Source of the DNA: Convolutriloba macropyga
Taxonomy: Eukaryota
DNA length: 64,000 nucleotides
Reading direction: 5' to 3'
Assembly: GCF_964194025.1 (NCBI RefSeq)
Contig: NC_134472.1
Span: 38,564,001-38,628,000, forward strand
The translations under genes were made by a program, and so were the position numbers. Under the pieces are notes generated by a model, which made no database searches, was not told where the DNA came from, and saw only the letters and a list, made by a program, of their open reading frames with translations. This document shows positions 649 to 24,004 of this stretch, piece after piece; position 1 is the first letter of the stretch; the number at the start of each line of letters is the position of its first letter.

Positions 649-1210
649 TTTTTTTAATTGACGGCTTTTATGGTTTGAAGGGCGATTTTTATTTTTGTTA
701 TATTGGACAAACCAAAACCAGCCCCTTTGCGCGTCATTTGAGAGGCTTTTGCCTGGCGGTAATCCGATCCATAAATTTCAATTTTGCGCAATATCTTATT
801 GTTTTGTAGACTGCTATGCTGTCGGGTACTATCTCCAGACTTATTGTTCTATACCGTAGTACCTGTGCTCATAAGCTGCTGAGAGCCTACCCAGCATCAA
901 TTGTGAACTATCGATGCCATAAGACTGTTGGAAAACTACACCCTCGATGTCCCTTCTGTAAGCTTATTTTCAAAAACGGAATTTGGCAGATTGATTGTAG
1001 TGTACATGGACGACACAAACAGAGGCTCAAGTATCCGAGGCGGTATTATCCCTACAGAATCTGATTTCAACTTTGCACAATGTTGACAAACAATTTATCT
1101 TGCGTATAAATTTGTTTTTGAGCTTTTCGACTTCATAAATGTCATTCGATGATATCGTGTGAATCGTTTCTAACGATGCAAACTGACTTACACATCTTTT
1201 TCAGTTCACG

Positions 1211-2377
1211 ATGATCAGAAAGAAAGCTGATTTGCAGATTCGCTCTGTCATTGATTTACTTCAGTCGTTGCATAGTCAAGTTCTGACCTATCTTTATGGG
1301 CAGCCAGCTGTCTGTATCATACTATTGCGAGAACTATCACTTGAAGAGCAGACTATAATAATGCGGCTGCTGTTCGTCGATCAGCCGTTCTCAGTAGCTG
1401 GAGTAAATGCTTGGTTTTTGGCATCATCTGAACAGGCGAACCATGGGGTGGATTTCAGTCAACTGCTCAGTTTAAAAGTATTTTCCGAATGTAAAACATC
1501 TGTTACACCTACAGTAGTAATGAATGACGATTTTCGAACGAGTCTAAAATCTGCATTGGGTGGGCTGGGAGCCCCATGGGATCTGCCCACTTTGCCCCCA
1601 GATCCGAAAATTCCCCAGAAGACAGTGGCAAACCTCAATGCATATGCAATTGAGAGATGGGAATCTTTGTTACAGTTCATGGTTGGTTCTGAGGGAAGTC
1701 GAGAGAAATTGAGCGACGAGACTATTGGAATCCTGCAAACGTGCGGCCTCATTGAATTGGATCTCACGGAATCTCCAAAGCCATCCCTTACGGCAAGTGG
1801 TTTTCAATTTCTGCTACAGGAAACCTCAGCTCAAGTATGGTACTTCTTGTCTCAATACTTCCTGAAATTAAACGCGAGAGATCCTGATCGTTTGACGGAG
1901 TCGCTTACATTTGTGTTGCAAATGTCTCAAGCTCAGTTAGGTAGGGAGTATTCAAGCGAAAATCTGTCTGATACGGTGATGAACTTCATTCAGTTTTTAA
2001 GAGAACTTGGGCTAATTTATATGCGCAAGAGAAGAGACGGCCGGTTTTATCCAACAAATTTGGCAGTTTCATTTACGAGAGGTTCGCATGCAACCATTAG
2101 CCTTGGTGACCGAAAAGATATTTCCAGGTACTTCGAAGGGGAAAGGAAGTCTCGCAACAGAGACGGGTTCATCGTTGTTGAATCAAACTTCAAAGTGTAT
2201 GCGTACACAGACTCAGATCTGCATGTAGCGTTAATCGCAATGTTCAGCGTAATATGTTACCGTTTTCCTGGTTGCCTTTGCTGTGTGATTACCAGAGAAA
2301 GTATTCGACAGTCACTACAGATGGGAATTTCTGCAGACAAAATTTTGCACTACCTATTATCGCACTTACACCCGCAG
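1211..2377 (+). CDS. GTF2H4: General transcription factor IIH subunit 4 (p52/Tfb2), coding exon 1
   Basis: ORF has p52 motifs (LYGQPAVC..LLREL, YAIERWESLLQFMV, LTASGFQFLL, LRELGLIYMRKRRDGRFYPT, GFIVVESNFKVYAYT, ITRESIRQSLQMGISADKI). Phase-0 donor CAG|GTTAGT after 2377. Confidence 0.95.
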
Positions 2378-3152
2378 GTTAGTTTGTTTCAATAACAAAC
2401 GTTCCCCAGTTTTTAAACATTTGAAAGAACGCTTATAATATGCGAGAGCAAGCAACAATCTTACCACTATGTTACTAATGTGCGTTGTGTCATATTTTTT
2501 CGGGGCGTTCATTCACCTCAAGCGTTTCTTGAAACCAGGAACTGTAAATTAAAGTGACCACATGGTTAGCATTATATGCTGACAATAAGCATCAATATTT
2601 TCGATCGCTACTTCATCATGATTTTCATTGATGCCAAAATATATGATACCATATTGAAATTTCTGTTAAAACAGATTTCGGTTAAAGAATGTTGAAAAAA
2701 TTAACAAAACAGTCTTGCGGCCTTTTTAATGCGATTTTTTGCTTGACCGATTTTTCGTCTGACGCTTTTGACTTCCTCCTCAAAACTGGCTCAACAGGTA
2801 AAGCCCGGAGGCCATTAAGTGGCTAAGCACCTTTCTAAGAGCCTTACGCTTTACTAGTCTCTAAGTATGCGATTCACCAAAACTGTTGAGCAGACATGAA
2901 ATCATTGTGAAGAAGGGTCGTTCTTCCCCATCCCTCAGCACCCCTCCGCCCCTCCTCAGTCCATTCCCACTTACATTTCCCGTCCACTCTCCGCGACCTG
3001 CCAATTTGGACCCCCTCCTCGTCCAGCAGTTCCCATCCCACTCCGTCATCGGCCAGCCCCCCCCCCCCCCCACCCCAACTTTGAGACCCCACTCCTAATC
3101 CCTTATCCTCTAGAATCCTTAAGCTAGCTGGCTACTTTCGTTGCGTTCATTG

Positions 3153-3442
3153 TGTTGCGGTCAAAACTAATATTTTAAATTTTTCATATCAAATTATTAG
3201 ATCGTTTTATGATGAGTATATAGCTATGCCCTCTAACGGCAATTCTCATCTATTAGAGCGAGCATTAGTGTAATTGGAGTCAAGTTGTATGACTTTTGAG
3301 TTACGAAATTCAAGTTATTTTCTTAAAGTTTTGCAGAAAATCCTAAGGAAATTACAGCCAAGAAAGGTTTCTAAAGCTTTAAACGAACCAGAACGTGCGT
3401 AAAGATATTTTTAGTTTTTCACTACTAATATCAGCCGTAACA
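3153..3442 (+). repeat. 5' LTR (290 bp)
   Basis: Starts TGTTGCGGTCAAAAC, ends GCCGTAACA. Followed by TGGTCC at 3447, a PBS-like start. Confidence 0.95.
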
Positions 3443-3483
3443 TTAATGGTCCGTATTTTCCCCGGACATTTAAAAAATAATAT

Positions 3484-6400
3484 TTGTTGTTTATTTTCAA
3501 AATGTTCAAGAAGTCGACAAAATCTCAGAAGAGTGCCAAGAAGTCGATGCCTTCTTCATCAGAACAACAAGCATCTTCCCAACAAAAAATCATCATTCCA
3601 TTCAGACGTGGCCGTCAAGAGCACTCTTTGGACTTGGTTAATTTGAATCAGAAGTATGACCAACTCAGAAGAAAAAGAGAAGAGTTGATACGATTGTTGA
3701 AAGGAAACTATAGTCTTGCTCGAGCTAGATCTGAAGTTGACGCATACTTCGAAGAAGAAGACAAGTTACTCAATCAGAGTAAAGTACAGGCCAAAAACGG
3801 TGGGACTGGTTGCTCTGAGGTAACAGAGAAATGTATTGACTACAGAAGTCGTCTAACGGATCACAAATGCTACATTTTGAATCTTTTCGATCTAAAGCAG
3901 CAGCATCAGAAAACAGAATGGTTTCGTTTGGAGAAGTTTCAGTCTACACATTCACTACATTGGCAGAAGATGCTCCAAATGCAGCAGTTCTAACGGACAG
4001 TACTCCTCAGGACAATGGCGTAAACCTTGTGAGCAGTGGCTCACAGAAAGAGAAAAGCGACAGCCCGACTCAAAACACAAGTCAAGTGGGTAAATCTGGT
4101 AATTACTCATTGGAGAACAAGCTTGCAAGAGAGGAGGAGAAGAGATTGCTAAAGCTCCAGAAAATTGAAGAAAGACAGGAGAAGGCCAAAAAGAAGGCCA
4201 ACATCAAGTCCAAAAAGCTTCAAATGGAGTTTGAAAGAAAGCAAAGAGAGCACGAAGAACAGATGAGACAAGTTGAGGAAAAACTTCAACTTCGCCTGAT
4301 GGAAGCCGAATTAGAAAGTTCTTCTGGAGAGACTTCTGACAAATCTAAACAATCAATTGAAACAGAGTCTGATGACGAATTTTCCCCGGAAGAACTTCAC
4401 GAGGAATGCGATGAGTACGCAGAAAACCTCAAAGTTCAACTGCCAGAAGTGGAGCGTCCATCAAGTTCTTTTTTAAAGACAGATAGTTATTCGAGTCGTT
4501 TATCAAAGTATCGACAGCAGTACAGTTCAGGAGAAGATATCGAAAATCCATTTGAGCAGCAAACAAGAATTCAAAGTACACCTCTGGGAAGCAGAGATAG
4601 ACGATGTTCACCTGATAGATACGCCTATTCAAATTCATTCTTGTCTCCAAGGGACAACGGTAATGGTATCTTTTCAACACCAACCAACAATAGTAACAGA
4701 AGTTTGCCAAAATTAAAACTGCGCGAAATTGATGGTAATCCATTGGATTGGCCTGAATGGAGTGGAATGTTTCTGTCTACAATACACAGCAGCAGTATTA
4801 GCCGAGACGAGAAATTGAGCCATTTGAAGACACTGCTTGTTGGAAAAGCAAAACGAGCTGTCAATGGAATGGGCTACTCTGGAACAATGTACGATCAGGC
4901 TTGGAACACACTGCAAGGAAAGTTTGGCCAGCCTCATCACATTGTTTCTTCACAACTTGCCAAAATTCAGAACTTCCCACAGGTTAGATTTAGCAACGTA
5001 TCATCCTTGATAGAGTTTGCTGATACGGTATCAACGTTTTTGAACATTCTACAGCAATTTGGGTACTCGAACGACTTGTTTTCTTCTAGTAACCTTGATA
5101 TTGCGGTCAGTAAGTTGCCGTTAGATACAAGCGTCGATGGCTTGCCTTTATAGAGGCCCCAACCAAAGCAAGACGAATACCAAATCTGGTCGAGTTTAAT
5201 AATTGGTTGCAAGAAGAAGCGCAAGTACATGAGCGATTGGTTCATTGTGCGCCTACATCGTCAAAATTCGAAAAACAGACGAAAGTTCGGTAAGAAAACT
5301 GATTTCAAGAAAAGTCCAAAGCCCAGCGAGTCAGCCTTCAGTTCAAATGACGATAAAACTCGGACCGAAAACAAATGTCCTATCGAAGGTTCAAATCATA
5401 GGGTCTGGAACTGTAATAAGTTCAAGAACATGAAAATAGATGAACGATACAATGTCGTTAAAGAAAAGAAGCTATGTTTTTGTTGTCTTGCTGATAACCA
5501 TGCAGCAAAAGACTGTCCAAGGAAAAAAAATTGTGGCGATGATGGCTCTGAGAAAACCCATAACAAGTTGCTTCACTACAGGAAAAGGTCGGAAAACTTG
5601 AAACCCATTAACAAGACAAGTGACTAATTTAACCAGCAATGTGGAGTCAATCAGAGGTTTAATGCAAATAGCACGTGTCAGAATCTTCGGAGATGAAGGA
5701 CAATTCGAAGATACTCTTGCTGTTTGTGACACAGGGTCTGCTCAGACGTGGGTGGATGAAGACTTGTTAGAAAAGCTTGAATTACGTGGAGAACCAGTGT
5801 CGTTAAATGTTACTGGAATTCACGGCACACAAATTACAACATGCAGAGCGGTTCAGGCTACAATTGGGGCGGCTAACTGTATGCAGGACAAAGGAAAGCT
5901 ACTCACAATTCACAGACAAAAGAACTTGGAAATTGGAACAAGCGGTTACAATGTCCAGGAGATGAAAGAAAAAAGTATCCCTACTTGAAGTGTGTGGGTT
6001 TCAAGCAGATCGATTTGAAGAAAGTTGCGATCATTCTAGGCCAGAATGCTTATGAACTGATTCGACCCGTCGAATACAAAAATGGCGGTGAAAACAAACG
6101 GTGGGCTATTATGTTACCACTTGGATGGACAGTCAGTGGTCCAGTTCCAATTAATCAGCTAAAACTCAGCGCAGCGTGTCATGTAGCCAACGATGGCGAC
6201 ATGAAACTAGCTGAAGTTATCAAGAAGTGGTGGGATATGGAGTCCTACGGAACACTTAAAGTTGCCGACAAGAGAACAAAAGAAGACAAACTAGCCACCG
6301 AGACTCTAAATTCAACGATCAAATTCAACGGCGAACGATATGAAGTTGGTTTTTTATGGAACGGTGAACAAGCAGCTTTATCCAACAACTTTTCATCAGC

Positions 6401-9400
6401 ATTGGGACAACTTCGAGGGTTGCAGCGTCGATTACAGACAGACGAATTGCTTAAAGTGAAATATACAGAAACAATTAGATCTTAGTAAAGGATATATCTC
6501 AATTCTTTCTAGCAGCGACTTGGCAGCAACAATCAACCAACAAGTCTGGTATGTACCACATCACCCAGTTTTGAATCCTCACAAACCCGACAAAGTGAGA
6601 AGAGTATGTAACGCAGCCAGCAAATTTCGCGGGACAAGTCTCAACGACATGCTTTTAGCAGGTCCGGATTTGCTAGCCAGTCTGATGGGAATCTTGGCAC
6701 GATTCCGAGAGAACCGATATGCTTTGAGTGCCGATATTGAAGAAATGTTCCTTCAAATTGAAGTCAGACCGGAAGATCGAAAGTTTCTACGGTTTCTATG
6801 GTCCGATGAAAATGACCAATTAGTAACGTATCAGTACAATAGACATATATTTGGCGCTAAATCGTCTCCAACTTGTGCAAACTTTGCGCTACAAAGATGT
6901 GCAACGGACAATGCTGAAAATTCAGATCGAGCTAGTGACATAGCATGCCATAACTTCTATATGGATGATCTACTTGTCTCGCTGCAGAGTCGGGAAGAAG
7001 CTGCTGACGACAAAGCAGAATTAATTGCTCTTTTAGCAAAAGGTGGTTTCAAACTAACTAAGTGGGCTACTAATTTTGATGAAGATGAAGTACAGGACAA
7101 GGCCCTGACGATTCTTGGATTAGAATGGAAAAACAAAATCGACACGCTGAAAGTATGCAGAGGTTTACAGTTTAAGCCTGAAAACTATTGGACCCAGCGA
7201 AAAGTGCTATCAATTGTCTCTAGCGTTTTTGATCCTTTGGGATTTCTGGCTCCATTTGTTATCCGTGGAAGAATAATCCTGAAAGGCATATGGCAGACAA
7301 GAGGACAACAATGGGACTCATTTATCGACGAGAACCTCAGTGATCAATTCTCGGATTGGGTCGGAGAATTGAATGCAGGTGAAGTGTTTGAAGTCAGCAG
7401 ATGGTATGAAACGTCGAGCTAAAACATTCGAAATGAGTTGCACGTTTTCGGTGATGCTTCAGAGGACGCATTTTGTGCGGTTGCATATCTTGTAACAGAA
7501 AACGATCAATCAGAGCGTAAAGTATCCTTTATCATAGGAAAAGCCAGAGTTGCACCTGTAAAGCATCATACAATTCCAAAAAATTGAGCTCATGGCAGCA
7601 TTAACCGGGAATCGACTGAAAGACACAATCATGAAGGAACACTCAATTCATTTCCATAAAGTTTTTATGTGGTCTGATTCTACAACAGTTATACAGTGGA
7701 TAAGATCGAGCAACGAGAAATAGCCTACTTTTGTTGCAAACAGAGTAGCATAAATGCTCGACACTTCAACTGTGGACGAATGGCACCACGTGGAAGGTGC
7801 TAAGAATCCAGCCGACCTTGGAACAAGAGGTCTCAGCTTCGATGACATAGCCAACAGTAATTGGATCAAGGGTCCAGATTGGCTGCTACAACCGATCTTG
7901 TTAAACGAAGATAATCAGCTTCCAGCAGAGCAGGATATGAATGTTCAAGTTTACGTGGCAAACGAAGTAATTGGTGTTGTCGATTGGAAACGATACAGCC
8001 AATACAACCGACTGAGGCGAACAATTGCTTGGATTTTATCTCTTGCCAGAATGAACTCTGAAGTGCATTCACTGCTAGAAGAAGCTGCACAACTGATTTG
8101 GAAATTAGTTCAGCTGGAAGTCTATTCTAAAGAAATTGATGACTTGAAATCCAAGAAAACAGTTTCTTCAAACAGCAAAATTGTTTCCTTATCTCCATTC
8201 ATTGATTCTACCGGTGTCCTGAGAGCAAAAGGACGACTGAGGAGAACTAGTTTACCATTCGAGACAAAACACCCAGTTATTTTGCCTCGCAAACATAGAG
8301 CAGTCGAATTGTTTTTGAGCTATCAGCACAAAATTTTTCATCACGAAGGGGTGGAGTATGTTCGGAACGAAGTACAGAAGAAATTTTGGATATTTGGATT
8401 AAGAAGCGCGCTGAGAGCAGTGAAACACAATTGTGTATCATGTCGACTGTTTACTAGCGGTAAAACTCCACAGATGAGTGATTTACCTACAGACCGAGTA
8501 ACGAATAATGTCCGATCATTCACAAATACCGGTGTCGATTATTTCGGACCGTTTGAAGTAAAGATGTTCAGACGTACAATAAAGAAGTGGGTGTGTCTCT
8601 TTACCTGCTTGAGTGTTAGAGCTGTTCATCTGGAACTGGTTGACAGCTTGGACACTGAAGCTTGCATTGGTGCTGTTCATAGGTTTATTGCAAGAAGAGG
8701 TCAACCTCAGTCAATAATCTCTGACAATGGAACAAATTTTGTTGGTCGGCTAGAGAGTTCAAGGAAGCCTTCCAGGAGCTCAGGAAAGACGAAATAGCAA
8801 GTAGACTGGCAGAGGAGAGCATCAAGTGGACCTTCAATCCTCCTGCAGCTCCTCACTTTGGAGGTGTATGGGAACGTCTTGTGAGGCAAACAGAGCTTAT
8901 GTTCTCGGCAAACAGAGCTTAACTGAAGACAGACTTCGCACAGTACTCTGTGTAGTTGAGAAGTTAATGAACAACCGACCACTTACGGTTGTTAGTGGAG
9001 ATGTCACCGATTTACAGCCACTGACACCAAACAACTTTCTGATAGGTCAAATTAGCATTAATTGGCCAAATGCGTTGTTTTGAACTACTGCGAGTTACAG
9101 AAAGCTGTTCAGAGATCAACATAGCATCCTAGTTGCCGTATGGAACCGTTGGATGTCTGAGTATTTGCTAAGCCTACAGCAGAGGACGAAGTGGGCCAAG
9201 GAAGAACTTATCGAGCCAAAAACTGGTGACCTGGTTTGGATAGTCGATAAGAATGTGCATCCATTCAACTTCCCGTTAGGAAGAATTCAAGAAGTTCATA
9301 AGAGTGACGACCAAATAGTCAGATCAGCGCTAGTAAAAACTACAACGGGTAGCTACAAAAGACCTATTGTGAAGTTGATCACTGTAAATAGTGACCTCAA

Positions 9401-9404
9401 GTGA
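3484..9404 (+). pseudogene. BEL/Pao gag-pol polyprotein broken by multiple frameshifts and stops
   Basis: DUF1759-type gag (LPKLKLREIDGNPLDWPEW), Zn knuckles (CFCCLADNHAAKDC, HNKLLH), aspartic protease DTGS, RT (HHPVLNPHKPDKVR, FYMDD), RNase H (LHVFGDASE), integrase ([33 protein letters not shown]) and C-terminal EYL..LQQRTKW, spread over ~10 ORF pieces. Confidence 0.93.
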
Positions 9405-9445
9405 TGTTTTTTTTTTGGATTTGTGACCAAAAACTGGGCCGGCTA

Positions 9446-9734
9446 TGTAGCGGTCAAAACTAATATTTTTAATTTTTCATATCAAATTATTAGATCGTTT
9501 TATGATGAGTATATAGCTATGCCCTCTAACGGCAATTCTCATCTATTAGAGCGAGCATTAGTGTAATTGGAGTCAAGTTGTATGACTTTTGAGTTACGAA
9601 ATTCAAGTTATTTTCTTAAAGTTTTGCAGAAAATCCTAAGGAAATTACAGTCAAGAAAAGTTTCTAAAGCTTTAAACGAACCAGAACGTGCGTAAAGATA
9701 TTTTTAGTTTTCACTACTAATATCAGCCGTAACA
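9446..9734 (+). repeat. 3' LTR (289 bp)
   Basis: Differs from the 5' LTR by 4 substitutions and one 1-nt indel, by eye. Confidence 0.95.
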
Positions 9735-9799
9735 CATTGGTTGTTTGTCAGCAGTTCGGTTGACGTAGGTTGGCGATTTTCGTATTTCGAGTTCTGCTG

Positions 9800-12200
9800 A
9801 ACGATTTTTTGTTTCGGAAGATCTCTTTGAGGTCTTTTTTAAGGGGTTTTCGATTATGAGCAAAATATAATGATCGTTTTGCTGATTCCACTTTATTGGT
9901 AATTTGGTAAATCTGTTTTGTTATGTCGAATCATTCTGAATGATTATACTAAAATGCGTGCACATATTTGGCCCGAGAGTTATTTTTGAAATGAATGGAT
10001 TTTCAAATCTAGAGTAGCATTTAATACAACATTCTAAGATCACTTTTTCATTGGATTTAACTTAATTTGAACCGGAGGTCTGCACACATCAAAGCTTTTC
10101 GGATCATCACCTGATTCAACTCAATTGGAGAGTAAAAGAAAAACACTTGCTCTTTTAAGAGATACTAAGTTTGCAAAGGATCCAGAAAAAGTTAAGCGCT
10201 ATTTTGGTGAACTAGACAAAGAGTTTGCATTAATGAAGAATAAATAACAATGTGTACTACTTATTCAAATGCATTCAATACTTTTAGCAGCGTGTTTTTA
10301 GATGTTAGATTTGCTCCAGTAAGAACGCTGCGTTGTGAGAAACCAAAACAGGCAAAATGATCCAGCTACAAACTGAAGAATCTTAGAAATAAGAAAAGTT
10401 TTGATAGCAGAAAAATGGAAAAATAGTGATAACAATGCTTGGTTAGAAGAATACAAAATATTAAGAAAAAATTTCGACAAACTGTTTTTGCGGCCAAAAG
10501 TTTTCAATGTAAACAGGTTTAGATCTTGCCTCGGTAATTAAAGACTAGTTTTAAAATTGCTAAGTGAAATAAGCGATGAAGTTATGAGCAGGTCCAGGGA
10601 ACTTGTACTGGAAACCGTCATTAACAATTTTGATCAGGGCAATGCAAGACAACGCAATTGCATTTAATAGTTTTTTTTTAATATTGTATTTGAAATCAAC
10701 AAACATTTCCTTGCTGAAAATGAACCAGAAGCTCCAACATAACGAAAGTTAATATTTCTTTTCAAAGATACATGGGAGGAAGTTAAAGTAATAATATCCA
10801 GTGTAGATAATGAGTCATCCTCCGGTGAGGGTTTTAGTAATCTTTTCATAAAATTGTCAGCTTCAGTAACTTTTGATTACGTTACCTTTTTAATCAATCT
10901 TTCCTTCAGCAGTGGCGAATTTCCGCAGGAGCCTAAAAAACCCGAAATCTTTCCTTTGCACAAATAGGGCTCTAAGAATGATAAACATAACTACAGACGT
11001 ATTTCACTACTTATTGTTTGAAGCAAGATTTTTGAAAGTAATTTTAATCGGGCATTCTCTCACCTCGAAAGATTTTCTTTGTTTTGGACTCCGAGACAAT
11101 TCGGATTCCGAAAAAAGCACAATACTGTTGATGCACTTGCTGAATTTACTGAAAGTTTGCGATCTGATGCAAATTGTGGAAACATTGACCTTTTCTTGGA
11201 GCAATCTTTTTGATACATTTGATCACAATATGATGATAAAGTAGTCATTGTTTCGTATCAGAGGAAACGCATTTGAATGGTTTGATGCATACCTCAAGCA
11301 TAGAGTAATGCGTGTTCATTTGAATCGAGTAATATTTTGCTGGGAAGAACTTAAATGTGGTGTGCCACAAGGACCTGTTCTTGACCCTCTTTTTTCACTA
11401 TTTATTTAAACGATTTTCCCTTTGTTTGTGGAAAGCATGTTATTCTGCTTGCAGACAGTACGAATCAAAGTGCTGTAGGAATGCAGGCAATTGCAAGATT
11501 TCAGAATATTAGCAAGTGACTTTATTCAAATAAATCAGTGGTAAACTTAGATAAAACCGTAAAGATTGATTCCAATACGGCAGCAAATGCTTCACACAAT
11601 TTTGACCCGGGGATTAAAAAGGAACCAGTTTGTAAGTGTCTCTGAGTACCTGTTGATTCTAAGGTATCTTTTGTCAGCCATATTGAGGAGATAAAGGGAG
11701 GTTCAGTAAGCAATGTGGTATTATTGCGAAGCTGAGACATTTTGTGCCTCAGGGAGCTGTTAAGGCATTACTATGAATCAAACATTAGGCGTATTATTCA
11801 CTGTGAAGTTTCAGTCTCTGGCTTTTGTAGTTATTCTGCGCTCCTTACAATGAAGTTCATTTACTGCAAAAAATTTGATTCATCTGAGGACATTTTCTGT
11901 AAGCACTCCATATTTACTGTTTGGCATGCACGTTTATGAATTAATAAAATTTGCTTTGAAGGCAATCAGTGGTCTTCATTGTGAAATTTTTCGTAATGAC
12001 ATAATTGTAGTATTGTCCTTAGAAAGAGAGTCGAGAGTTTGTGCGAGTAGATTACTCAAACAAACTTTGTGTAAAAAAGAATAGAGCGCTGTTCAATCAA
12101 ATTTCGAGCATCAATACTGTACAATCAATTGTAAACCCCTAGGAATTGTTCCGGCGGACTTTGAACCGAAGACGCCTATCGAAATTTGTTTTTGGCCACA
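9800..12200 (+). mobile_element. Decayed LINE (APE-type, CR1/L2/Jockey-group) ORF2 reverse-transcriptase remnant
   Basis: Fragments across frames: YRRISLL..SKIFE (~10992), GFRKKHNTVDAL (~11103), FEWFDAYLKHR (~11272), ELKCGVPQGPVLDP (~11348), ILLADST (degenerate FADD). Boundaries are approximate. Confidence 0.8.
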
Positions 12201-12953
12201 AGGTGAAGGGTTCCTTTTCTGTTTACAATGACGAACTTGTTAGATTTGTTTTTAATGCTGAACTTTTGTTTCACAATGTATATCTTTCAAACATTAATAA
12301 GTTGTAAGTTGGAGTTGTAATTTTAATTTAGGTTGTGTATAATATCCAACTCTTGGGTAGACTGAGAAGTTGGTGTATATAACCGCATTGTCTGTCCCCT
12401 CCAATGTAATATGATAATTTGCTGTACTGTGTACATATTTTTCTATTGTAGAAAATTTATTTCTCCCGTTAGCAATGATTTCCCTTCTCTTGTTTTTCAC
12501 TTTCATACAGTTAGAGTTTCGTCTTTGTACTATGAGTTATAAATGATGGTTTTACAAGTTTCATCTTTGTACTTTGAGTTATAAATGATGGTTTTACAGT
12601 CAAGGGGTTGTTTCCCTTTGTAATTTGTGAGATATAGTAATACTTTTTTCTTGTATATTCAGTCATTTTCTTAGTGATACTTTTTTTTCTTGTATTTTCA
12701 GACATATCCAGAAAAAATCTTCGAACAATCTGAACGATTTGTGATTATGGATGCTGGATAAACAATAATCTTCAGACTAATAATTAAACGAATTTATTAT
12801 TTTAAAAAAGTCATGAAAACAGATATTGCAGAATTCTCCCTAAAATTTTGTTTCCTTTTAAAAGTTTTTGGTACCTTATGCAATAAGATGAAGGCGCAGT
12901 TGACAATATTGAAGTCGCAAACAAGAATTTTATGCGTTGTTTAATGTTAAATA

Positions 12954-13707
12954 TTAACAGCCGCGAAGCGATAGCGGCTCTTATTGGGGACATCGTTATT
13001 TTTTTACAATTCTGAGAATTTGAATTGTATTGGGGCGCTGTCTTTTTTAAGATCTGTTTCCACATTTTAATTATTTTGGATAAGTCAAATTGGATAAGCG
13101 ATTTTGCTCACGCCGAAACAGGAAGTGCAGCGAAAAAGCGAGTGTGAAGAAATTCTCTCACAGTCCCTACTAGGTCTAGTCTTTTGTTTAGTCAATGAAA
13201 ATTCTTTGAATTGTACGTCAGGACTTGCCCGCTATGTTTTTTAATTCGTCGTCTCCATCGATGGTTCTTACGGCCTGACGTCTTGGAATTGACTTCATTG
13301 ACTTAAGTGACTTCTACTGCTTTGCAGTTAAAATTTTTTTGCGTGACTTACCTCACTCAAAAATGTCTTCTGAACTCACTTATGGAACATCAAATTTTAC
13401 AAACATTTACTAGTTAGAGATCAATAGTGCGCATCTAAGTAGTGCCAAATCTATATGCCCTAATTCTTGAGTATTAGTCTTGAGTTTTTGATTTCGAATA
13501 TTAATTTTGAAAAAGCTCTTTTAGAGCTTTTTCCTTATAGACCGTACGTGTCATAAAATTGACAGTCCGAATCTAACCCAAAAAGTCTAGTGGTCTATTA
13601 AAGGACTGTTGATCAATCTGTTTGTCTTATTTCTTTAGTTGTTTCAATTCACGGGAGGCCACATGCGTCTATCGCGGCTATTTTCCCGCAATATGCTGGC
13701 TGTTTTT
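12954..13707 (+). mobile_element. Non-autonomous Helentron/DINE-1-like element, family A
   Basis: 5' palindrome TAACAGCCGC-GAAGCGATA-GCGGCTCTTA. 3' sub-terminal IR CTATCGCGGCTATT followed by a short hairpin and T-run. The 5' part matches 37521-37690 and the 3' part matches 40220-40710. Confidence 0.65.
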
Positions 13708-14199
13708 CGTTATTCGTGCGGTGCTCAAAAGTATGGAAAGCTCTGTTTTCGGAAACACCATACGTCAATGGTGACAAATAGGCAAACAAAAAATAATTGG
13801 AATGGTGGACAGTAGTGTCTATCATCAGCTATAGATTGCTCTCTGGTTTAATGAAAATTGGATTAAAATAATCCAGAAAAAAAACGAGAGATTCGATATA
13901 AGTTAACTTGAATATTAACTACAGATTAAGATTGACTCTCCTTGGTCGATGCATTTTGAGTTGCATGATCTGCTACTTGTAATCTCCTGAATCAATGGCA
14001 ACTATAGCATCAAATTTTCCCATAGGTTGAAACGCGCTAAATACTGAAGGAACGACGAAGGGCATAATGAGCTGGTTAAAATACTGAAAACTCAAAACGA
14101 AAATGGCGGATAAGAATTTTTGAAAAGAGCAAGTGATTTGCTAAATCTAATTAGAAAAATTCATACATGGGGTTGCTAAGTAGTTTTTTTACCTTGGGA

Positions 14200-16550
14200 G
14201 TGATTTTTTACAATCCAAAGAATTTGGATTGTATAGGTGCTCTGTCTATTTTTTGTAAGATGTTTTCACACATTTTTCAATGACTTTGAGCTTCTGAACA
14301 GCTCGGCGGGCATTAAGTTGCAATAGAGGACCTCAGCTGGCCTTAGTAACCTTAGCTTAAGGTGCTTAATGTGCTGAAACTGCTGTAAGGTCTAATTTCA
14401 AGGTGAAAAGGTTAGTTTTCGCTGTTTTTGAGCCCTGAATGCAGCAACTTTTTTCTTGTTTGTCAATTTTCTTGAATTTTTGTAAATTTGGTTATTTCAA
14501 AGTTCGGTCATTGTTTATTTGGCTATTATGCTATATCTTTTTGATAATGTTTTTGGTCTGTTTTATTTGTTTATGTCAACTTTAACACCAGAGTCAAAGC
14601 ATTTTTCACTAAATTATTTAAGTTTTCAAGGCTTGAAATGGGTTTTTAAAAGGATAGAATTGTGTTTTATTAAAACAAAACTCACTGATTGTGGTTTTTG
14701 CTTCTGCTTGTTGGTGTCCAGAAAAACATCTAAAGAATTTCATTTTGTGTTTTCATTTTTTTTTTTTACTGTTTTTGTATAACTCAGTTCTCGTTAACTT
14801 CACAACCGGAATATCTACGAGAAATTCCGTTTTCATAATACTCATTTTGGGTCAAAAATTTATTAGTTGGAAGTTTCTGTTCAATTCTTTGGATTTTAAT
14901 TCAGGCTGTTTTTTTAAATTTTGTAAGATGTTTTTACACCTTTTTCCATGACTTAGAGCTGTCAAAACGGGATAAGCAGGTAAAGCTCTGCTGATATTAA
15001 TATGCATTAGAGGCCCTTAGCTTGTAGTGGTGCAATTGCTGGCGCAATGAAGGCCTTAATTCAGGGTTAAAAGGTAATAGTTTTTGAGCCAAAAATGTGC
15101 ATTTTCACGTTTTTTTAAATCATTTTCAAGTTTTTGTTTCATCAGTCCTTAAATGGCGTTTTTCAAAGTTGATAACGGTCTTTTGCACGACAAATACTTT
15201 TTCTGAGCGTTTTGTGAGCTATATGTTTTTTACTGCAAAATAAACACGCAAAAAGAAAGGGTCAGTTAAATTTTCAAATTTCGTCTTAAAAATGGGTTAC
15301 TGGAAAGATTCGAGAGAACGGGGCAATTAATGTTATTTCTTGCAAAGTGTTTACTGGACATATTCAAGAGAAAAAAAATGGCTTTGAATATATTAATCGG
15401 TTCTTAATTGGTTTTTTACAATCCAAAGAATTCTGATTGTATTTGTGCTCTGTCATTAAAAATCTCTCTGGTACCTTTGAAAATGGGTTAAACAGGTAGT
15501 GCCAAGCGGGAATTGAGTTTCATCAGAGGCCCTAAGCTGGTTTTAGTAGTTTTTGAAGTGCCCAGAGTGCTCAACTTGCTGAGAGGGCTTAAATTCAATG
15601 TGACAAGGTCATTTTTGTTGTTTTTGAGTCCAAGATAGTCAATTTTAAATGTTTTTTTTGTCTTTTTAAAGTTTTTTATTGGATAAGTGTCACAATAACG
15701 CTTTCCAAAGTTCATAAAGATCAGTTGCGAGCCATGTCTGTTTTTTTGGGCTTTATAACTTTGTAATGCAAAAACAGTGATAGTAATTTTTGCGATGTTT
15801 GTCGTTATTTTGAGTTTTTCAATCTTTAGGGGTAAGGGAAACCTTTTTAGAGCTTAAAGGTGGTTTACTGGATGGTTTCTGGAGACAATGGGATGTTTCT
15901 GAAACTATCATTATCAAGAAGTTTAGCGGCGTTTCTTTACAGTCTGCAATTTTTGTCAAAATTTTGAAAATTTTTATTTTTGGTTTATGCCCTTTAGGGC
16001 AATTGAATTTTTTGAGAGTTTAAATTTGGTTTACTAGACAGTGGTTAGAGGTGAAGCAATGGTTTTAAAGATTTTAATGTCCAATTTTTGTCGTCTATTC
16101 AATGAAATTTGCAGTTTTCATCAAGTTCTTTTTCGTTTTTACAGTCTTTCAATCTATAGGGAGCAATGGAACTTTTGAGTTTGGCGATGAATTACTTGAT
16201 AATTTTAGTGACAATGAAGTACTTTTTAAGATCATAGCTTCTTGAATTTTAGAGACGTCAATAAAATTTGCAGTTTTTTTCAGTTTATAAAGTTTTTGTT
16301 AACGTTTTTCGATCTGTAGTGTCCATAGAGTTTTGAGGTCGTTGCTGTGTCTATACATTAACTTTAACTTTACAATTTACATGTTGAAAGTTTTTAATGC
16401 CATAAGTTCTATCGGATCTTACTAACTTCTCAGTGATTATTAAAAAGAAGTGACATTTCTTTTCCGGTCTATTTCTGATTCTTTTTGAGACTGCAGATCT
16501 ACGAAGCTATCGCGGCTATCCTCTGGCAATCTTTCAGCTATATTTATCAG
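14200..16550 (+). mobile_element. Composite of decayed Helentron-like repeat modules ending in a family-A 3' terminus
   Basis: Module ACAATCCAAAGAATTTGGATTGT...AGAGGCCCT(C/A)AGCTGG recurs at ~14210, ~14885 and ~15418 (also ~58500, ~60100). Terminus GCTATCGCGGCTATCCTCTGGCAATCTTTCAGCTATATTT at 16506-16545. Confidence 0.5.
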
Positions 16551-17428
16551 GTTGAAAACAAAATTTGTTTAAGCTGCTTGAGATAGAAATTAAGAGATGA
16601 CATCAGTACACAAAAACTTTGAGGCACGTTGCTAGTATGTCATTTTGTTCCCCTCACAATATTTTGCTGTTGATTTATTTACTTCCACATCTGTTGGAAC
16701 CATGTGCGCGCACACATTACCTTGTCAGGTTTTGGCATATGATACCCTTTCTGATTTTTTGATGAAGTGGTGGGAAAGGAGATGATGATTGTTTTTTTTT
16801 GTAGAAGAGCTTGCAGTATTTTTTGAACATTTTTCCAAAATAAATTTTTCCAGGATGATGGAAATGCTTAGGGCCTGAGGACTAATTTTTTATCAGCGCA
16901 TGATGTGATGCACGTCCCGAAATTGAGGACATTTTATGCAAGAATTTTTGAAGAATTACGAATTTTAGAAATTTAAGTTTTTAAGCTTATATGGAATGCC
17001 AAACGGCATACATTGATTAGCTTAAGTTATATCGACGTGCACTTGGTCAAAACTTAGGAGCAAGTGAAAAAATGGGAATTTTTTGTTTTTGGAAATAAAA
17101 AATTCTACACTAAATTAAATAAAAAATTCATTTTTACACTTTGGTAAAATAGAGTAAAATGGAGTAATGGAGTGACTTGAAATGCTAGTTAAGGCTCCTT
17201 ATGATGCCAAAAGTGAAAAATCACCATTTTTGGATAAGATTTAAATAACTATAATTCTTGTTTTTTGAAACTGGCCAAATTATTTGCAACTCCGATAAGT
17301 TGAAAAATGTTACCGCAAAAGCATTCCCAAGGAACGGACTGTGAGGGCCCCGACCACATGGTTCAGTTTTTGCATTGCCAACCTGTCGGCCACCAAACGT
17401 AAGTGAAAAAGTTCTTGTATCTGTTTAG

Positions 17429-17785
17429 GCAGGAAACGAGTTCCCGCCAACAGTTGTAGACCAGTTGTATTTATGGGAAATGGAAACGGGGAAGATGACC
17501 TTCACTCCAGGAGTTCTCTATTCAAATTTCCTATCCCACGCCCAATTTCAATTCCTTCACCAGTACGCAGTCAGTTTACCTTCCCAATCTGGACATTGCA
17601 AATCCCAGAGTGCTGGGAGCAGTAGTGACCAGATACAAGGAGTACCTCAAGATCCCTCAGATTTGGTAGCGGGTGGTGTTTTGTATGCGAACAGCACACG
17701 TCGAATGATGGTGGTCGATGAAGCTAGTCATGAGCCGGTAAAGAAACACTGGAAGGCCAATAAGTCACGCTTCGAAGCTTCGTGA
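17429..17785 (+). CDS. GTF2H4: GTF2H4 coding exon 2 (C-terminal domain); spliced product ~507 aa
   Basis: Acceptor CTGTTTAG| at 17428, phase 0. Reads AGNEFPPTVVDQLYLWEME..FTPGVLYSNFLS...GVLYANSTRRMMVV...HEPVKKHWK, matching the p52 C-terminus (PPTITDQIRLWELE..GVLYNQFLS). Intron 2378-17428. Confidence 0.92.
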   Translation, partial: AGNEFPPTVVDQLYLWEMETGKMTFTPGVLYSNFLSHAQFQFLHQYAVSLPSQSGHCKSQSAGSSSDQIQGVPQDPSDLVAGGVLYANSTRRMMVVDEASHEPVKKHWKANKSRFEAS

Positions 17786-17972
17786 CCTGAAATTTGACAT
17801 GATCTCATTGGCTGTTATCTTGATTTACTCTATTTGTTTTGAATTGATTGTTGCATATTAAGATGAGATATTTATCTGATTAGTGCTCCCTATTTTAATT
17901 ATTAAGGGTTTGGGCGTGATGGAGAAATTAATGATCCTTGTTTATTCTTACAGGTGTCACTTTTCAGATTAA

Positions 17973-18666
17973 ATGAAAATTGCATGTGCTCTAACAAAAT
18001 GGGCCGATTTCATACCCAAATGCAAGCGTCACATGTTTACTGCTCACTTAGCTTCCCTCAAAGACAAACGAGCAATGTTTGCACAACAGCTTCCAGACCC
18101 AATCACTGAAGATCTGATTAATGATTTGAACGGATCGTACAACTGGTCCACTTATTGCGGCGTCGACCCAACAGGACCATCATTACACCTCGGACACCTG
18201 TTTCCCCTCATGGCACTGTTTAACATCAGACGTGTTGGCTATCCTGTTATTGTATTGATCGGTGGAGCAACCGCTAGAATTGGAGATCCTAGTGACAAAA
18301 AGGAGCAGCGCAAAGTTCTTCCTACAGATACTTTAAATCAGAATAAAGAGAAGCTTCGCAAACAGATTGCCAGTTTGGATCGTAATTTTATCAGTTATAT
18401 TGAGAAGCAGAATAGTGACTTGAAAAATGTGGGGGAAATGAAAATAGTTGACAACAGTGAGTGGTATGACAATGAATCGCTGGTTCCTTTTCTAGCCGAA
18501 AGTGGACGATGGATGAGTGTTAGTCACATGTTATCTCTCTCGTTCGTGAAACAGAGACTCCAAAGTGGAAATAAACTGAGCTTGGCCGAACTTTTCTACC
18601 AGATGCTTCAGGCACATGACTTTCTCCAGCTGTTGGAGCGATACAACTGTCGTGCACAAGTAGGAG
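17973..18666 (+). CDS. YARS2: Mitochondrial tyrosyl-tRNA synthetase, exon 1
   Basis: YCGVDPTGPSLHLGH (HIGH motif), LIGGATARIGDPS, VDNSEWY, ELFYQMLQAHDF. A phase-1 donor G|GTCCCT after 18666 is needed to rebuild QVGGSDQWGN. Confidence 0.93.
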
Positions 18667-18999
18667 GTCCCTCATTTTAACATTTGAATTTGTGAAAATA
18701 GCCAAGTTTTTCTATCATAAAAAATTTTCAATTAATACTTGCAAAATTTTTTTAAGCGGTGTATAGATTTTTGGCTAGTCAACTATCTCAAATTCTGCTT
18801 CAAGTGGCGTAGACTGAATTTGGTTTGGTTTCGATTAAGCAGTGGCTTTTTCCGTGATTTGATTGAAATTTTGTCATTCATTCGTTGATTAACAAAGTTG
18901 CGGTATTTGTCAAATTGAGATAAGTGAGCTTGGAAACTGCTCTTTTGGTATGCCAGAAAATGTTTCACGTGAAAGTTCTTTAACATTGTATTTTTTCAG

Positions 19000-19580
19000 G
19001 CTCTGATCAGTGGGGCAATATGCTAGGTGGCTATGAGTACATAAAAGCGAGAAAAGGAGTTCGGACTCTTTGCTTAACAACCCCATTACTTCTATCTGGT
19101 CAGTCTAAGATGGGCAAAAGTAACACCAATCCTTCACCCGATTCATCAGGCAGTGGCAGTCTAGTCGCCAACAGCAACGTTTGGTTAGATGCAGATATGA
19201 CCTCGCCCTATGCGATGTATCAGTATCTACTGCAGCGTAGTGATGCAGAAGCGCCTCAAATGCTGAAATCTTTGTCCCTTACTGATGACGTCACTGTACA
19301 TCAACCGTTATCCTCAATCTCAACAGAATCAAGTGACGACGTTCGGTTTGTCCAAAGAAAATTAGCTGAAACGGTTGTGAAATTTGTCCATGGCGAAGTA
19401 GGATTAAAGGAAGCCCAGTTAGCTACGCATCATCTACATGCGAGAAAACCATGTTTGGATAATGTTGACGAAGAAGCGCTCGAAAGTCTTCTTAAAAGTG
19501 TTCAAGTAATTGATGTGCGTTGTGAAGAAACAATAGCACAAGTACTGTCGAGGTGTCATTTTTTTGCATATGGAATTGAG
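19000..19580 (+). CDS. YARS2: YARS2 exon 2
   Basis: Acceptor TTTTTTCAG|. Encodes SDQWGN, KMGKS (KMSKS motif), VWLDADMTSPYAMYQY and QRKLAETVVKFVHGEVGL. Donor GAG|GTAAGT, phase 0. Confidence 0.93.
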
Positions 19581-20349
19581 GTAAGTCGTATCATTGCAGC
19601 CGTCTAACTTATCGTCCGCCTTGTTACGTAGTTTGTTCTTTGTGTTTATAATAATAATATTAAATTTAACCAAGCTTGGTTTTACCAACTTCGCATACCC
19701 CGATTGTGGTTGGATTAGCTTTGGGTTTTTCTTTTTTCATGTCTCAAATAATATCCATCCAGAGGGGTATAACTTGTATCTGAAGTTTACTTGTGATTCT
19801 TCGTTCAAAAATCTTGTTAGCTCACTCTTGAATTTAGTTGTGTTCGAGAGGGCTAAGTTCAATTAATGGACTATTAATTCAGATTAGAGCACTGTGAGTT
19901 ATTAACCAAGTAATGAAGTAATGTAATTAATGTAATTTGCTTAAAAAAATTATGCACGAGCATGTGAAAAGCACAAAAGCGATGACTACCCAGTTTCTAC
20001 TCGATTTCTCCATATTTTCGGTAATTTTGGTGGCTTGTTTATCAGATGCGCAGTAAATAAGAGGAGGCAGTGATGGTAAACAGACAAAATCTCCTCATTT
20101 CTTAAATAAATTTAAGAAATAAAAATTTTACTAAGGCCGGATTATAAAAATTCATTGACTGTTTGGGGGTCTTTTTAATGCTGCCTTTGGAAGGTTAATG
20201 CTGTTACTCTCGGAGCGCAGAGAAATCGTGGAAACAATTAGGCAGTTCTGTGTAATTCTTATAGCAGTGCTTCAAAAGAGCAGTGCTTTAAAAAACGAGG
20301 TATTTTTTTCCTGGACAAGATTGCAGGACTGAAAATGAATTGCGTTGAT

Positions 20350-22520
20350 AAACATTCTTAGTTTTCCTTACATTTAACATCAGTTTAGCTCATTATTCAA
20401 TCATGCGGACAATGCAGCCAAACCTCAAGCAAAGAAGTTGTAAATCAAGAGCTTAGCGAAGAGGATACTGTGCAATCGTTTGCTAACATGTGGGCTACAA
20501 TGTGTCTTGTAGATAAAGGTTCTTTGTCTTCCAGGTTCAGTTTAAGACCAAAATTCTTCAAGAAAAACACAAAGCCTGCACCTCTTTATCACGGAACGTT
20601 GTTTAAATGACTTACCGCCAATAGAGATCTATACTTTAAATTCAAAACTCAGTTTTTTGCGTGGCGCAAGGTTAACGCTATTTGCTTCTGTCGACTCGTA
20701 ACGCTCTACAAAAATTCAGCGGTATGACCGATAAGTCATGGAGAGACGTTTACTTAGAAAGGCAGTTGCTGATTAAACAGATGTAGTCCAATTTTGAGCT
20801 ACTGAGCATTTAACTCGACGGCTCTCCTGTTGTATCGAAGGGTCTACGCATAGACTTAGACAACTATTTGACAAAATTGGTTTTGGCCTGCTGTTATTTG
20901 ACGGAAAAAATGCTTTCCATTTAATCAAGCACAAGGCTACTCATGTAAACGTCAGAAAACACTGGTCACAGTCCTCCAAAATTTAAGCTAGCGCGTGCGC
21001 AGAAACAGGTAATAGCATGTACCGTGAAGGCCTGATTCAAGGGGATCAACTTTCCATGTTTCTCGGAGTTGCCGTGATGCCACTAATTGAACCTTTACGT
21101 CATCTAGAAAAACATTGAAAGACGCCGCTGCTTGCGCTAATTTTAAATTTTCAACTTGACTCGAAAAAATCATTGAAACTGTTTCGAAATTTGGCTTTTA
21201 CGCAGAGCCAGCAAGTGTTTTCTCATTGCCAACCAAAACCACGGAAGCTCAAGGGTATTTTGACAAATTGGGTTTGAAAGTCTTGTGAAAACGGTTTTAG
21301 GTGGTTTTATCGGCGACCGTAACAGTTTGGGATATTTTCTAAACAAAAAGTTAAGAATTGGAACAATTTTAGGCTTCAGATTTTCTATGACGCCCTTGAC
21401 TAATATCTTCATGAAGCGGCTTAAGTTTTCACATGATCAACCCAAGTAGACCACCAGGAGGAGAATAATTCCTACAACCCTTTGAGCACACAACACAAAG
21501 CATATTTTGTCAGCCGTCAAATGATAGTAATGTACATGACATGATGCGTAAGATAGTCAGCCTATGAGCACAACACGGTAGTTTGTTATAACGAACCCCC
21601 GCTTGCAAAGTCAAAGAACAATTTGACGTTTCCAGAGAATCATCAAGCTTGATAGCAGATTCTGTTGTTGTTACAACCGAGTTGAACGCTGAGGAACACG
21701 GATCACCCGTCCATAGGATTTAACTTCGTAAACAAATGGAATCTGATCAATGTCAGCTTTACCTTGAATTTTCAGAGCAGTTAACGAATACTGAGTAGGG
21801 CGGATAGAGAGGAACTTCAATAATGGTAATTTGTTTTAATTAACAGCAACATTTTCCGAGAGATAATTTTTGACGGCCCAAAAAACGATTGTTCTGACGC
21901 CATGGCTCAACGCTAAGGATTCATTGGTTTCAAATAAAAATTCTCTCAAAATCTAATGTGGCCTAGTTTTCAATGTTCAAAATTGCCTTCATCTGCAAGA
22001 GAGGTGGCCTCTGTAAGCAAGGGCATGAAATGCGATATCTTAAGGGATTAAGCTAGCATGGCGTGTCCCTGCACAGAAAATGAACCATTCATCAGAGAAT
22101 GGTCAGAGTTAGGCAGCTCTAAGAGCCAATCTTTTAGTCGGTGGAGTATGGAAGACCTCAAGAAACTCCCTTGTTTGATATCCGTGTCACTGACACAGGC
22201 AAAATCGTTCTGCAGAAACCCGATAGACGTATTAGAGCTGAGCTGATGAAAAGCGAAACAATTATTGGAGCGTATCAGGAGAAGCATATCTCTTTTACCC
22301 TCTGTGTTCAGCGTTGATGATATGATGGCCCGAGAAAGCACTATTTTTCTGAAAAGACTAGAAGATAGATCGTCGTCCAATTGTTAAAAAGCATTTCGCC
22401 AAAATTATGATCTAGATCAATACAAGACTTAGTTCTGCCATACTTAGATTGTCAAACCTTTGTATGAGAGGTGAGAGATGCAAAAGTCAACCTTGCCAGT
22501 TCGAAGATGGAGTGTTTCTT
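20350..22520 (+). mobile_element. Decayed CRE-like (RLE-type) non-LTR retrotransposon remnant in YARS2 intron 2
   Basis: Fragments LGYFLNKK (~21326), ICKRGG (~21991, CCHC-region remnant), PSVFSVDDMMARESTIFLKRLE (~22298) and INTRLSSAILRLSNLCMRGER (~22416) fit the C-terminal pattern of CRE-like elements. The start boundary is uncertain. Confidence 0.65.
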
Positions 22521-23836: not shown

Positions 23837-24004
23837 ACAATTGAGACCAAAGTTAAAAATGGGTCTGTGAAAATCAACGGAACGAAAGTGAGGTCATCAG
23901 ATACAGCCTCTATCGAGTTTTTTGATGACAGTCATTATCCTCGGTATGCAATTCTTGCTATTGGGAAACATTACAGATCTCTATTGCATCTCACATCTCT
24001 CTGA
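23837..24004 (+). CDS. YARS2: YARS2 exon 3 (S4-like C-terminal domain); spliced product ~480 aa
   Basis: Acceptor TTTCTGTTTTAG|, phase 0. Reads TIETKVKNGSVKINGTKV...YAILAIGKHYRSLLHLTSL*. Too short to appear in the ORF track. Confidence 0.85.
   Translation, partial: TIETKVKNGSVKINGTKVRSSDTASIEFFDDSHYPRYAILAIGKHYRSLLHLTSL

Follow-up and report, generated by a model that had tools for sequence, protein, structure and literature searches.

Probable spliced-leader trans-splicing and a possible GTF2H4-YARS2 operon in the acoel Convolutriloba macropyga

Operons resolved by spliced-leader (SL) trans-splicing show a patchy distribution among animals, with examples in nematodes, flatworms, tunicates, chaetognaths and rotifers, and they are thought to have had several origins. 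The operons of Ciona typically lack intercistronic DNA almost entirely, as opposed to the 140-180 nt found at the locus of the acoel Convolutriloba macropyga described here. This locus resembles the operons of C. elegans in its co-oriented housekeeping genes, in its short intercistronic regions (~100 nt in the nematode) and in an unpaired splice acceptor near the downstream ATG, as well as in the mix of mitochondrial and basal gene-expression functions that is frequent in the nematode operons (PMC8629364). On the other hand, C. elegans uses a specialised leader, SL2, for downstream genes, whereas a single leader type, the only one sought, was found in C. macropyga. Upstream genes of C. elegans operons also normally keep an AAUAAA, whereas the C. 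macropyga spacers carry no canonical poly(A) signal. An SL2-type downstream leader is known from nematodes only and is not required in the operons of flatworms, tunicates and chaetognaths (PMC12460157), and Macrostomum lignano, chaetognaths and tunicates employ one leader for both monocistronic and operonic genes. As for distances, chaetognath (Paraspadella) operons follow a rule of same-strand spacing below 250 bp (PMC12460157), and the intergenic regions of Macrostomum and C. elegans operons have a mode of ~100 bp, repeat-adjusted in the case of Macrostomum (PMC8629364). Operons in Macrostomum and chaetognaths have been called from genome-wide SL-read and 3′-end data, whereas the C. macropyga unit is a candidate proposed from DNA sequence.

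The closest described system is another acoel, Symsagittifera roscoffensis, which has the same leader and the same GTF2H4-YARS2 layout, with a gap of 157 nt between both genes. In this species, 30.2% of the genes are trans-spliced (Martinez et al. 2022, PMC9911081). That work reports trans-splicing and does not describe operons, a word that occurs 0 times in its text and supplement, and no report of operons in acoels or in Xenacoelomorpha as a whole was found in the literature searched. SL trans-splicing in acoels is already published.

Gene models and intercistronic spacers

The window analysed here, a stretch of 64,000 nt of C. macropyga contig NC_134472.1 (38,564,001-38,628,000), contains three host genes in a row on the same strand (Table 1). 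The preliminary description of this DNA had recognized GTF2H4 and YARS2, and both identities agree with the Pfam matches to Tfb2 (326.7 bits), Tfb2_C (58.8 bits) and tRNA-synt_1b (117.5 and 35.9 bits). The conceptual GTF2H4 protein of 507 aa, encoded in 2 exons, can be aligned over its full length to the 498-aa protein of S. roscoffensis (XP_063715745.1). The whole YARS2 protein, a mitochondrial tyrosyl-tRNA synthetase, amounts to 480 aa from 3 exons, and its class-I motif QVGGSDQWGN is restored across the first intron only when the unusual GTCCCT donor is used. The small gene MRPL36 lies 146 nt before GTF2H4 in the same orientation, which makes the candidate unit one of three genes, MRPL36-GTF2H4-YARS2. 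Upstream of MRPL36, 8 kb of sequence contain transposon debris alone and no host gene, which fits MRPL36 as the first gene of the unit, although a single promoter is not thereby demonstrated. The next gene beyond YARS2 lies on the opposite strand, in convergent orientation.

Table 1. Features of the MRPL36-GTF2H4-YARS2 region in window coordinates
Feature	Position	Strand	Remarks
MRPL36 acceptor, TTGTTTTGTAG	799..809	+	6 nt ahead of MRPL36 ATG
MRPL36 (bL36m) CDS	816..1064	+	82 aa, single exon; Pfam PF00444, 29.8 bits (cutoff 26.1)
Spacer 1 (MRPL36-GTF2H4)	1065..1210	+	146 nt, T-rich; TATAAA at 1105; acceptor CTTTTTCAG ending 1204, 6 nt ahead of GTF2H4 ATG
GTF2H4 (TFIIH p52/Tfb2) exon 1	1211..2377	+	Pfam Tfb2, E 2e-97; donor GTTAGT at 2378
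GTF2H4 intron	2378..17428	+	15 kb; holds decayed BEL/Pao LTR retroelement
GTF2H4 last exon (Tfb2_C)	17429..17785	+	stop TGA 17783-17785
Spacer 2 (GTF2H4-YARS2)	17786..17972	+	187 nt, 44% T (window sequence)
Acceptor A, TTCTTACAG	17945..17953	+	19 nt ahead of YARS2 ATG
Acceptor B, CTTTTCAG	17960..17967	+	5 nt ahead of YARS2 ATG
YARS2 exon 1	17973..18666	+	donor GTCCCT at 18667, non-consensus
YARS2 exon 2	19000..19580	+	donor GTAAGT at 19581
YARS2 exon 3 (S4-like C-terminus)	23837..24004	+	tblastn with S. roscoffensis C-terminus; stop 24002-24004
AATAAA	24064..24069	+	60 nt past YARS2 stop

The retroelement in the GTF2H4 intron extends over ~3400-9400 on the sense strand and shows Pfam matches to DUF1759 (gag-like), Peptidase_A17, RVT_1 and rve. 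In this decayed copy, the domains (gag-like, Pao peptidase, reverse transcriptase and integrase) lie in shifted frames. Another segment of this intron, of ~40 nt (16480-16518), reaches a summed contig depth of ~1.2-1.9 x 10^5 in all 4 DNA runs and shows many differing loose contig ends on both sides; it belongs to a very high-copy repeat. YARS2 and its preceding spacer are present as a single copy in the genome.

The preliminary description had placed the GTF2H4 stop and the YARS2 ATG (17973-17975) 187 nt apart, which is exact to the base. It had also presented this spacer as T-rich, devoid of AATAAA and with an ATTAAA overlapping the start codon, in agreement with the base counts (T 82, A 47, G 35, C 23) and with a motif scan of all 187 nt, in which AATAAA occurs 0 times and the sole ATTAAA maps at 17968, over the YARS2 ATG. 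Neither in C. macropyga nor in S. roscoffensis does the spacer contain a canonical poly(A) signal (AATAAA or ATTAAA) of its own. In C. macropyga, the same applies to the spacer between MRPL36 and GTF2H4. Among the three genes, YARS2 alone, the terminal one, was found to be followed by a canonical poly(A) signal (AATAAA). Both acceptors and the in-frame TAA of the earlier account are present in the window sequence, the latter at 17970-17972, directly before the ATG. A scan for splice donors (GT[AG]AGT or GTAAG) across 17700-17990 gave none. On the other hand, a TATA-like TATTTTAA occurs in the spacer at 17891, 62-76 nt ahead of the acceptors, and it is absent from the counterpart spacer of S. 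roscoffensis. In 4 DNA runs of one study, contigs covering 16000-21900 continue unbroken through introns and spacer at an even depth of ~37-70, with no intron joints and only allelic SNPs, such as those at 17803, 17804 and 17826.

Spliced leader and acceptors at the gene starts

The published leader of S. roscoffensis, the only query used in the leader search, has exact occurrences in the C. macropyga genome and 2,612 matches at up to 3 mismatches, versus 0 in reversed controls. At the SL RNA genes, the leader exon has 31 nt (GCCTAATTGTTGTGATAAACTTATTAAATAG), which are the first 31 nt of the published 32-nt leader, and it ends in ...AAATAG followed by a GTAAGT donor. There are at least 1,245 such leader-GTAAGT copies genome-wide, with tandem arrays on C9, and the predicted fold of the SL RNA shows a stem-loop 1, a single-stranded U-rich Sm-like motif (AGUUUUAUUUGA) and a stem-loop 2. 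The arrays at C9 23.1-23.8 Mb are very large, with a period of 1.06-2 kb and blocks in both orientations.

Moreover, 406 exact 31-nt leader copies are followed by sequences other than the SL RNA intron, and an ATG lies 2-23 nt past the junction in 19 of the 30 copies sampled. These copies look like retroposed leader-bearing RNAs, or like retroelement families with the leader at their 5′ end, and they share with the structure proposed for YARS2 the same order of leader, few bases and AUG. Many of them group in families such as SL-(TTTCAG)AG-ATGAGCCAGCGAGGCATG, with ORFs that start with MSQRGM and reach up to 338 aa, and some retain a TTTCAG acceptor right behind the leader. A retroposed copy of YARS2 with the leader, which would be a sort of fossil cDNA, was sought in the genome and none was found.

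All three consecutive genes of the window start just behind a splice acceptor, at 6 nt for MRPL36, 6 nt for GTF2H4 and 5 nt for YARS2. Acceptor-like strings could be expected by chance in T-rich spacers, as pyrimidine runs followed by YAG are not uncommon there (this strand has 4.9 acceptor-like sites per kb); transcription of YARS2 would then begin within the spacer and its 5′ UTR would be unspliced. However, only 4.2% of the ATGs in the window, under a lenient definition, are preceded by an acceptor-like AG at 2-8 nt, so that a coincidence at all three genes would have a frequency of about 0.042 cubed. In addition, a TTTCAG-type acceptor 2-7 nt before the YARS2 ATG is kept in three acoel lineages, the flanks of which are otherwise unalignable. 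In S. roscoffensis, the acceptor CTCTTTCAG is followed by ATGAA-ATG, a 5-nt spacing, whereas the acceptors in two assemblies of a third lineage are TGTTTTTCAG with 7 nt to the ATG (ERZ26859043) and CTGTTTTCAG with 2 nt (ERZ25074608). The GTF2H4 acceptor is likewise kept in S. roscoffensis and ERZ26859043. Given that nothing else around them can be aligned in other acoels, these acceptors are under selection, and a chance origin is very improbable.

A different possibility is that YARS2 is spliced in cis, with a non-coding 5′ UTR exon and a promoter of its own, located within the GTF2H4 intron or farther upstream, that exon being joined at 17953 or 17967 with no leader involved. An intron in the 5′ UTR would give the same picture of an acceptor behind an in-frame stop, and the fast evolution of 5′ UTR exons makes their missing conservation a weak counter-evidence. 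Nevertheless, the spacer offers no consensus donor, and the recurrence of a 2-7-nt spacing between acceptor and ATG, in three adjacent genes as well as in three lineages, is characteristic of leader addition where the genome is rich in SL RNA genes. The preliminary description had considered such an exon as hidden in the 15-kb GTF2H4 intron, an idea that finds no support in the comparison with S. roscoffensis, where the GTF2H4 introns offer just ~190 and ~885 nt. A BLASTN search of window positions 1-21000 with the S. roscoffensis loci aligns the coding exons only, with no conserved non-coding block in the introns of both species. Splicing in cis, from this intron or from elsewhere upstream, is therefore unlikely.

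The presence of SL RNA genes, the conserved geometry between acceptor and ATG, the donor-free spacer and the in-frame TAA together argue for trans-splicing, and the 5′ end of the YARS2 mRNA is very probably made by SL addition, as judged from these genomic features. The 31-nt leader would be spliced to acceptor B, ending at 17967, and perhaps to acceptor A, ending at 17953, as well, so that the leader end ...CTTATTAAATAG would abut 17968 and/or 17954 and few bases would be left before the YARS2 AUG. The 14 nt that separate the two acceptors have the appearance of a local insertion. The flank upstream of acceptor A resembles that of the S. roscoffensis acceptor, and the downstream context of acceptor B (CAG/ATTAAATG) matches that of S. 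roscoffensis (CAG/ATGAAATG). This downstream similarity, together with a spacing of 5-6 nt like that of the other gene starts, makes acceptor B the likelier SL site, although A, B or both may be in use.

Synteny in other acoels and the origin of the YARS2 precursor

The genes GTF2H4 (498 aa) and YARS2 (455 aa) are also annotated side by side in S. roscoffensis (GCA_963678635.1), on the same strand and 157 nt apart, as compared to 187 nt in C. macropyga. The S. roscoffensis loci examined (L001, L010 and L049) fall in one 90% cluster together with XP_063715745.1. L049 belongs to GCA_963678635.1, where the gene pair spans about 37,486,954-37,493,932 of OY783237.1 (10001-16979 of L049). The synteny evidence amounts to one independent species comparison. 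The gap between both genes has thus stayed below 190 nt in the two species, while other intervals have gained kilobases of repeats. The large GTF2H4 intron of C. macropyga, for instance, measures 15 kb versus ~0.19 kb in S. roscoffensis, an 80-fold difference. The MRPL36 ortholog of S. roscoffensis, which has an extra intron, maps at 55-222 of locus L010, 9.8 kb upstream of GTF2H4, versus 146 nt in C. macropyga. Tight spacing is thus unnecessary for this first pair of genes. Repeats are able to swell operon spacers, which may explain the 9.8-kb gap.

The GTF2H4 gene of S. roscoffensis also has an extra intron of ~0.9 kb (8731-9616 in L001 and 11501-12371 in L010), which interrupts a variable linker before the Tfb2_C helix and has no counterpart in C. 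macropyga or the third lineage. A tblastn split in S. roscoffensis had raised the candidate of an intron within the last GTF2H4 exon, which was rejected: the 498-aa RefSeq protein contains the linker, and S. roscoffensis has its additional intron, of 885 nt, at this place.

The third lineage (ERZ26859043 and ERZ25074608) shows a different arrangement. On one contig and one strand, the gene order is GTF2H4, a WD40 gene, a leucine-rich repeat (LRR) gene and YARS2, with gaps of 348-738 nt between GTF2H4 and WD40, 468 nt between WD40 and LRR and 8-15 kb between LRR and YARS2. GTF2H4 and YARS2 are still co-oriented there but 20-34 kb apart. The WD40 and LRR orthologues of C. macropyga map elsewhere, away from GTF2H4-YARS2. 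Each of the two assemblies contains two versions of the region, either haplotigs or duplicates (L009, L050, L051, L018 and L002), and the LRR protein has 96% identity between both assemblies and 82% to that of C. macropyga.

The YARS2 acceptor persists in this lineage even though the 8-15 kb ahead of YARS2 contain no gene, which indicates that the acceptor alone is no proof of an operon and that YARS2 presumably can rely on its own promoter. The preliminary description had taken the unpaired acceptor behind a short spacer as the mark of an operon resolved by trans-splicing. As an SL site, this acceptor gains from the evidence presented above, whereas as an operon mark by itself it does not hold.

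A common transcript is made plausible by the short GTF2H4-YARS2 gap of both C. macropyga and S. roscoffensis, by a spacer devoid of canonical poly(A) signals in either species and by the lack of conserved promoter-like blocks. Stop-to-acceptor distances of 140 nt for MRPL36-GTF2H4 and of 168 or 182 nt for GTF2H4-YARS2 are inside the chaetognath rule and compatible with the mode of ~100 bp. The precursor bearing the YARS2 acceptor would most likely be a read-through transcript from GTF2H4, possibly initiated at a promoter upstream of MRPL36. The upstream message would be cleaved at its 3′ side inside each spacer of ~150-190 nt, and the SL would be added to the downstream message. On the available sequence, a common transcript for GTF2H4-YARS2, or for all three genes, seems as apt to be true as false. 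That MRPL36-GTF2H4-YARS2 is a genuine polycistronic unit, with a GTF2H4-YARS2 core conserved since the split of Convolutriloba and Symsagittifera, can be proposed tentatively, at a little under even probability.

Trans-splicing could also act on YARS2 transcripts from a separate promoter, in the spacer or in the 3′ part of GTF2H4, with a short outron. Both genes would then be just tight neighbours, or belong to a hybrid unit that has an internal promoter. Besides the situation of the third lineage, where YARS2 retains this acceptor far from any upstream gene, this possibility is favoured by S. roscoffensis, with 30% of trans-spliced genes and operons undescribed (PMC9911081), and by other SL taxa, where most trans-spliced genes lie outside operons (PMC8629364). 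The TATAAA at 1105 and the TATA-like motif at 17891, the latter 62-76 nt from the YARS2 acceptors, might act as core promoters followed by short outrons. However, that TATA-like motif is missing in S. roscoffensis, and the 3′ UTR and cleavage site of GTF2H4 would leave at most ~100 nt for promoter and outron. When the 260 nt preceding YARS2 were compared by k-mers at 4 loci, only the acceptor was found at a conserved position and no promoter-like block emerged, so that the acceptor is the sole feature common to the spacers of C. macropyga and S. roscoffensis and to the other YARS2 upstream regions. A MAFFT alignment of the spacers was uninformative past the first few bases after the stop. The persistence of a gap below 190 nt in two genomes whose other intervals have swelled by kilobases of repeats also speaks against independent neighbours, and a separate YARS2 promoter is a plausible but rather doubtful explanation.

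Protein collections were also searched for products of acoel transcripts. They contain no transcript-derived acoel GTF2H4, YARS2 or MRPL36, the acoel matches to YARS2 exon 1 being genomic ORFs only. The search with the GTF2H4 protein gave no full-length acoel transcript product, even though the length range would have admitted one, and neither did an exhaustive search of representatives, while MRPL36 had no exact entry and no word-sharing candidates.

Implications for acoel gene expression

Operons are common in taxa with SL trans-splicing, and finding one here would be unsurprising to specialists. The GTF2H4-YARS2 junction is short and conserved, and it lends itself to tests by RT-PCR or long reads at a compact, clearly delimited place. 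Genes of C. macropyga start a few bases behind an acceptor, so that annotating their 5′ UTRs and promoters by proximity would be wrong. If the polycistronic reading is true, Xenacoelomorpha would join the operon-bearing animal lineages with a conserved dicistron or tricistron of housekeeping genes, two of which serve mitochondrial translation and one TFIIH.
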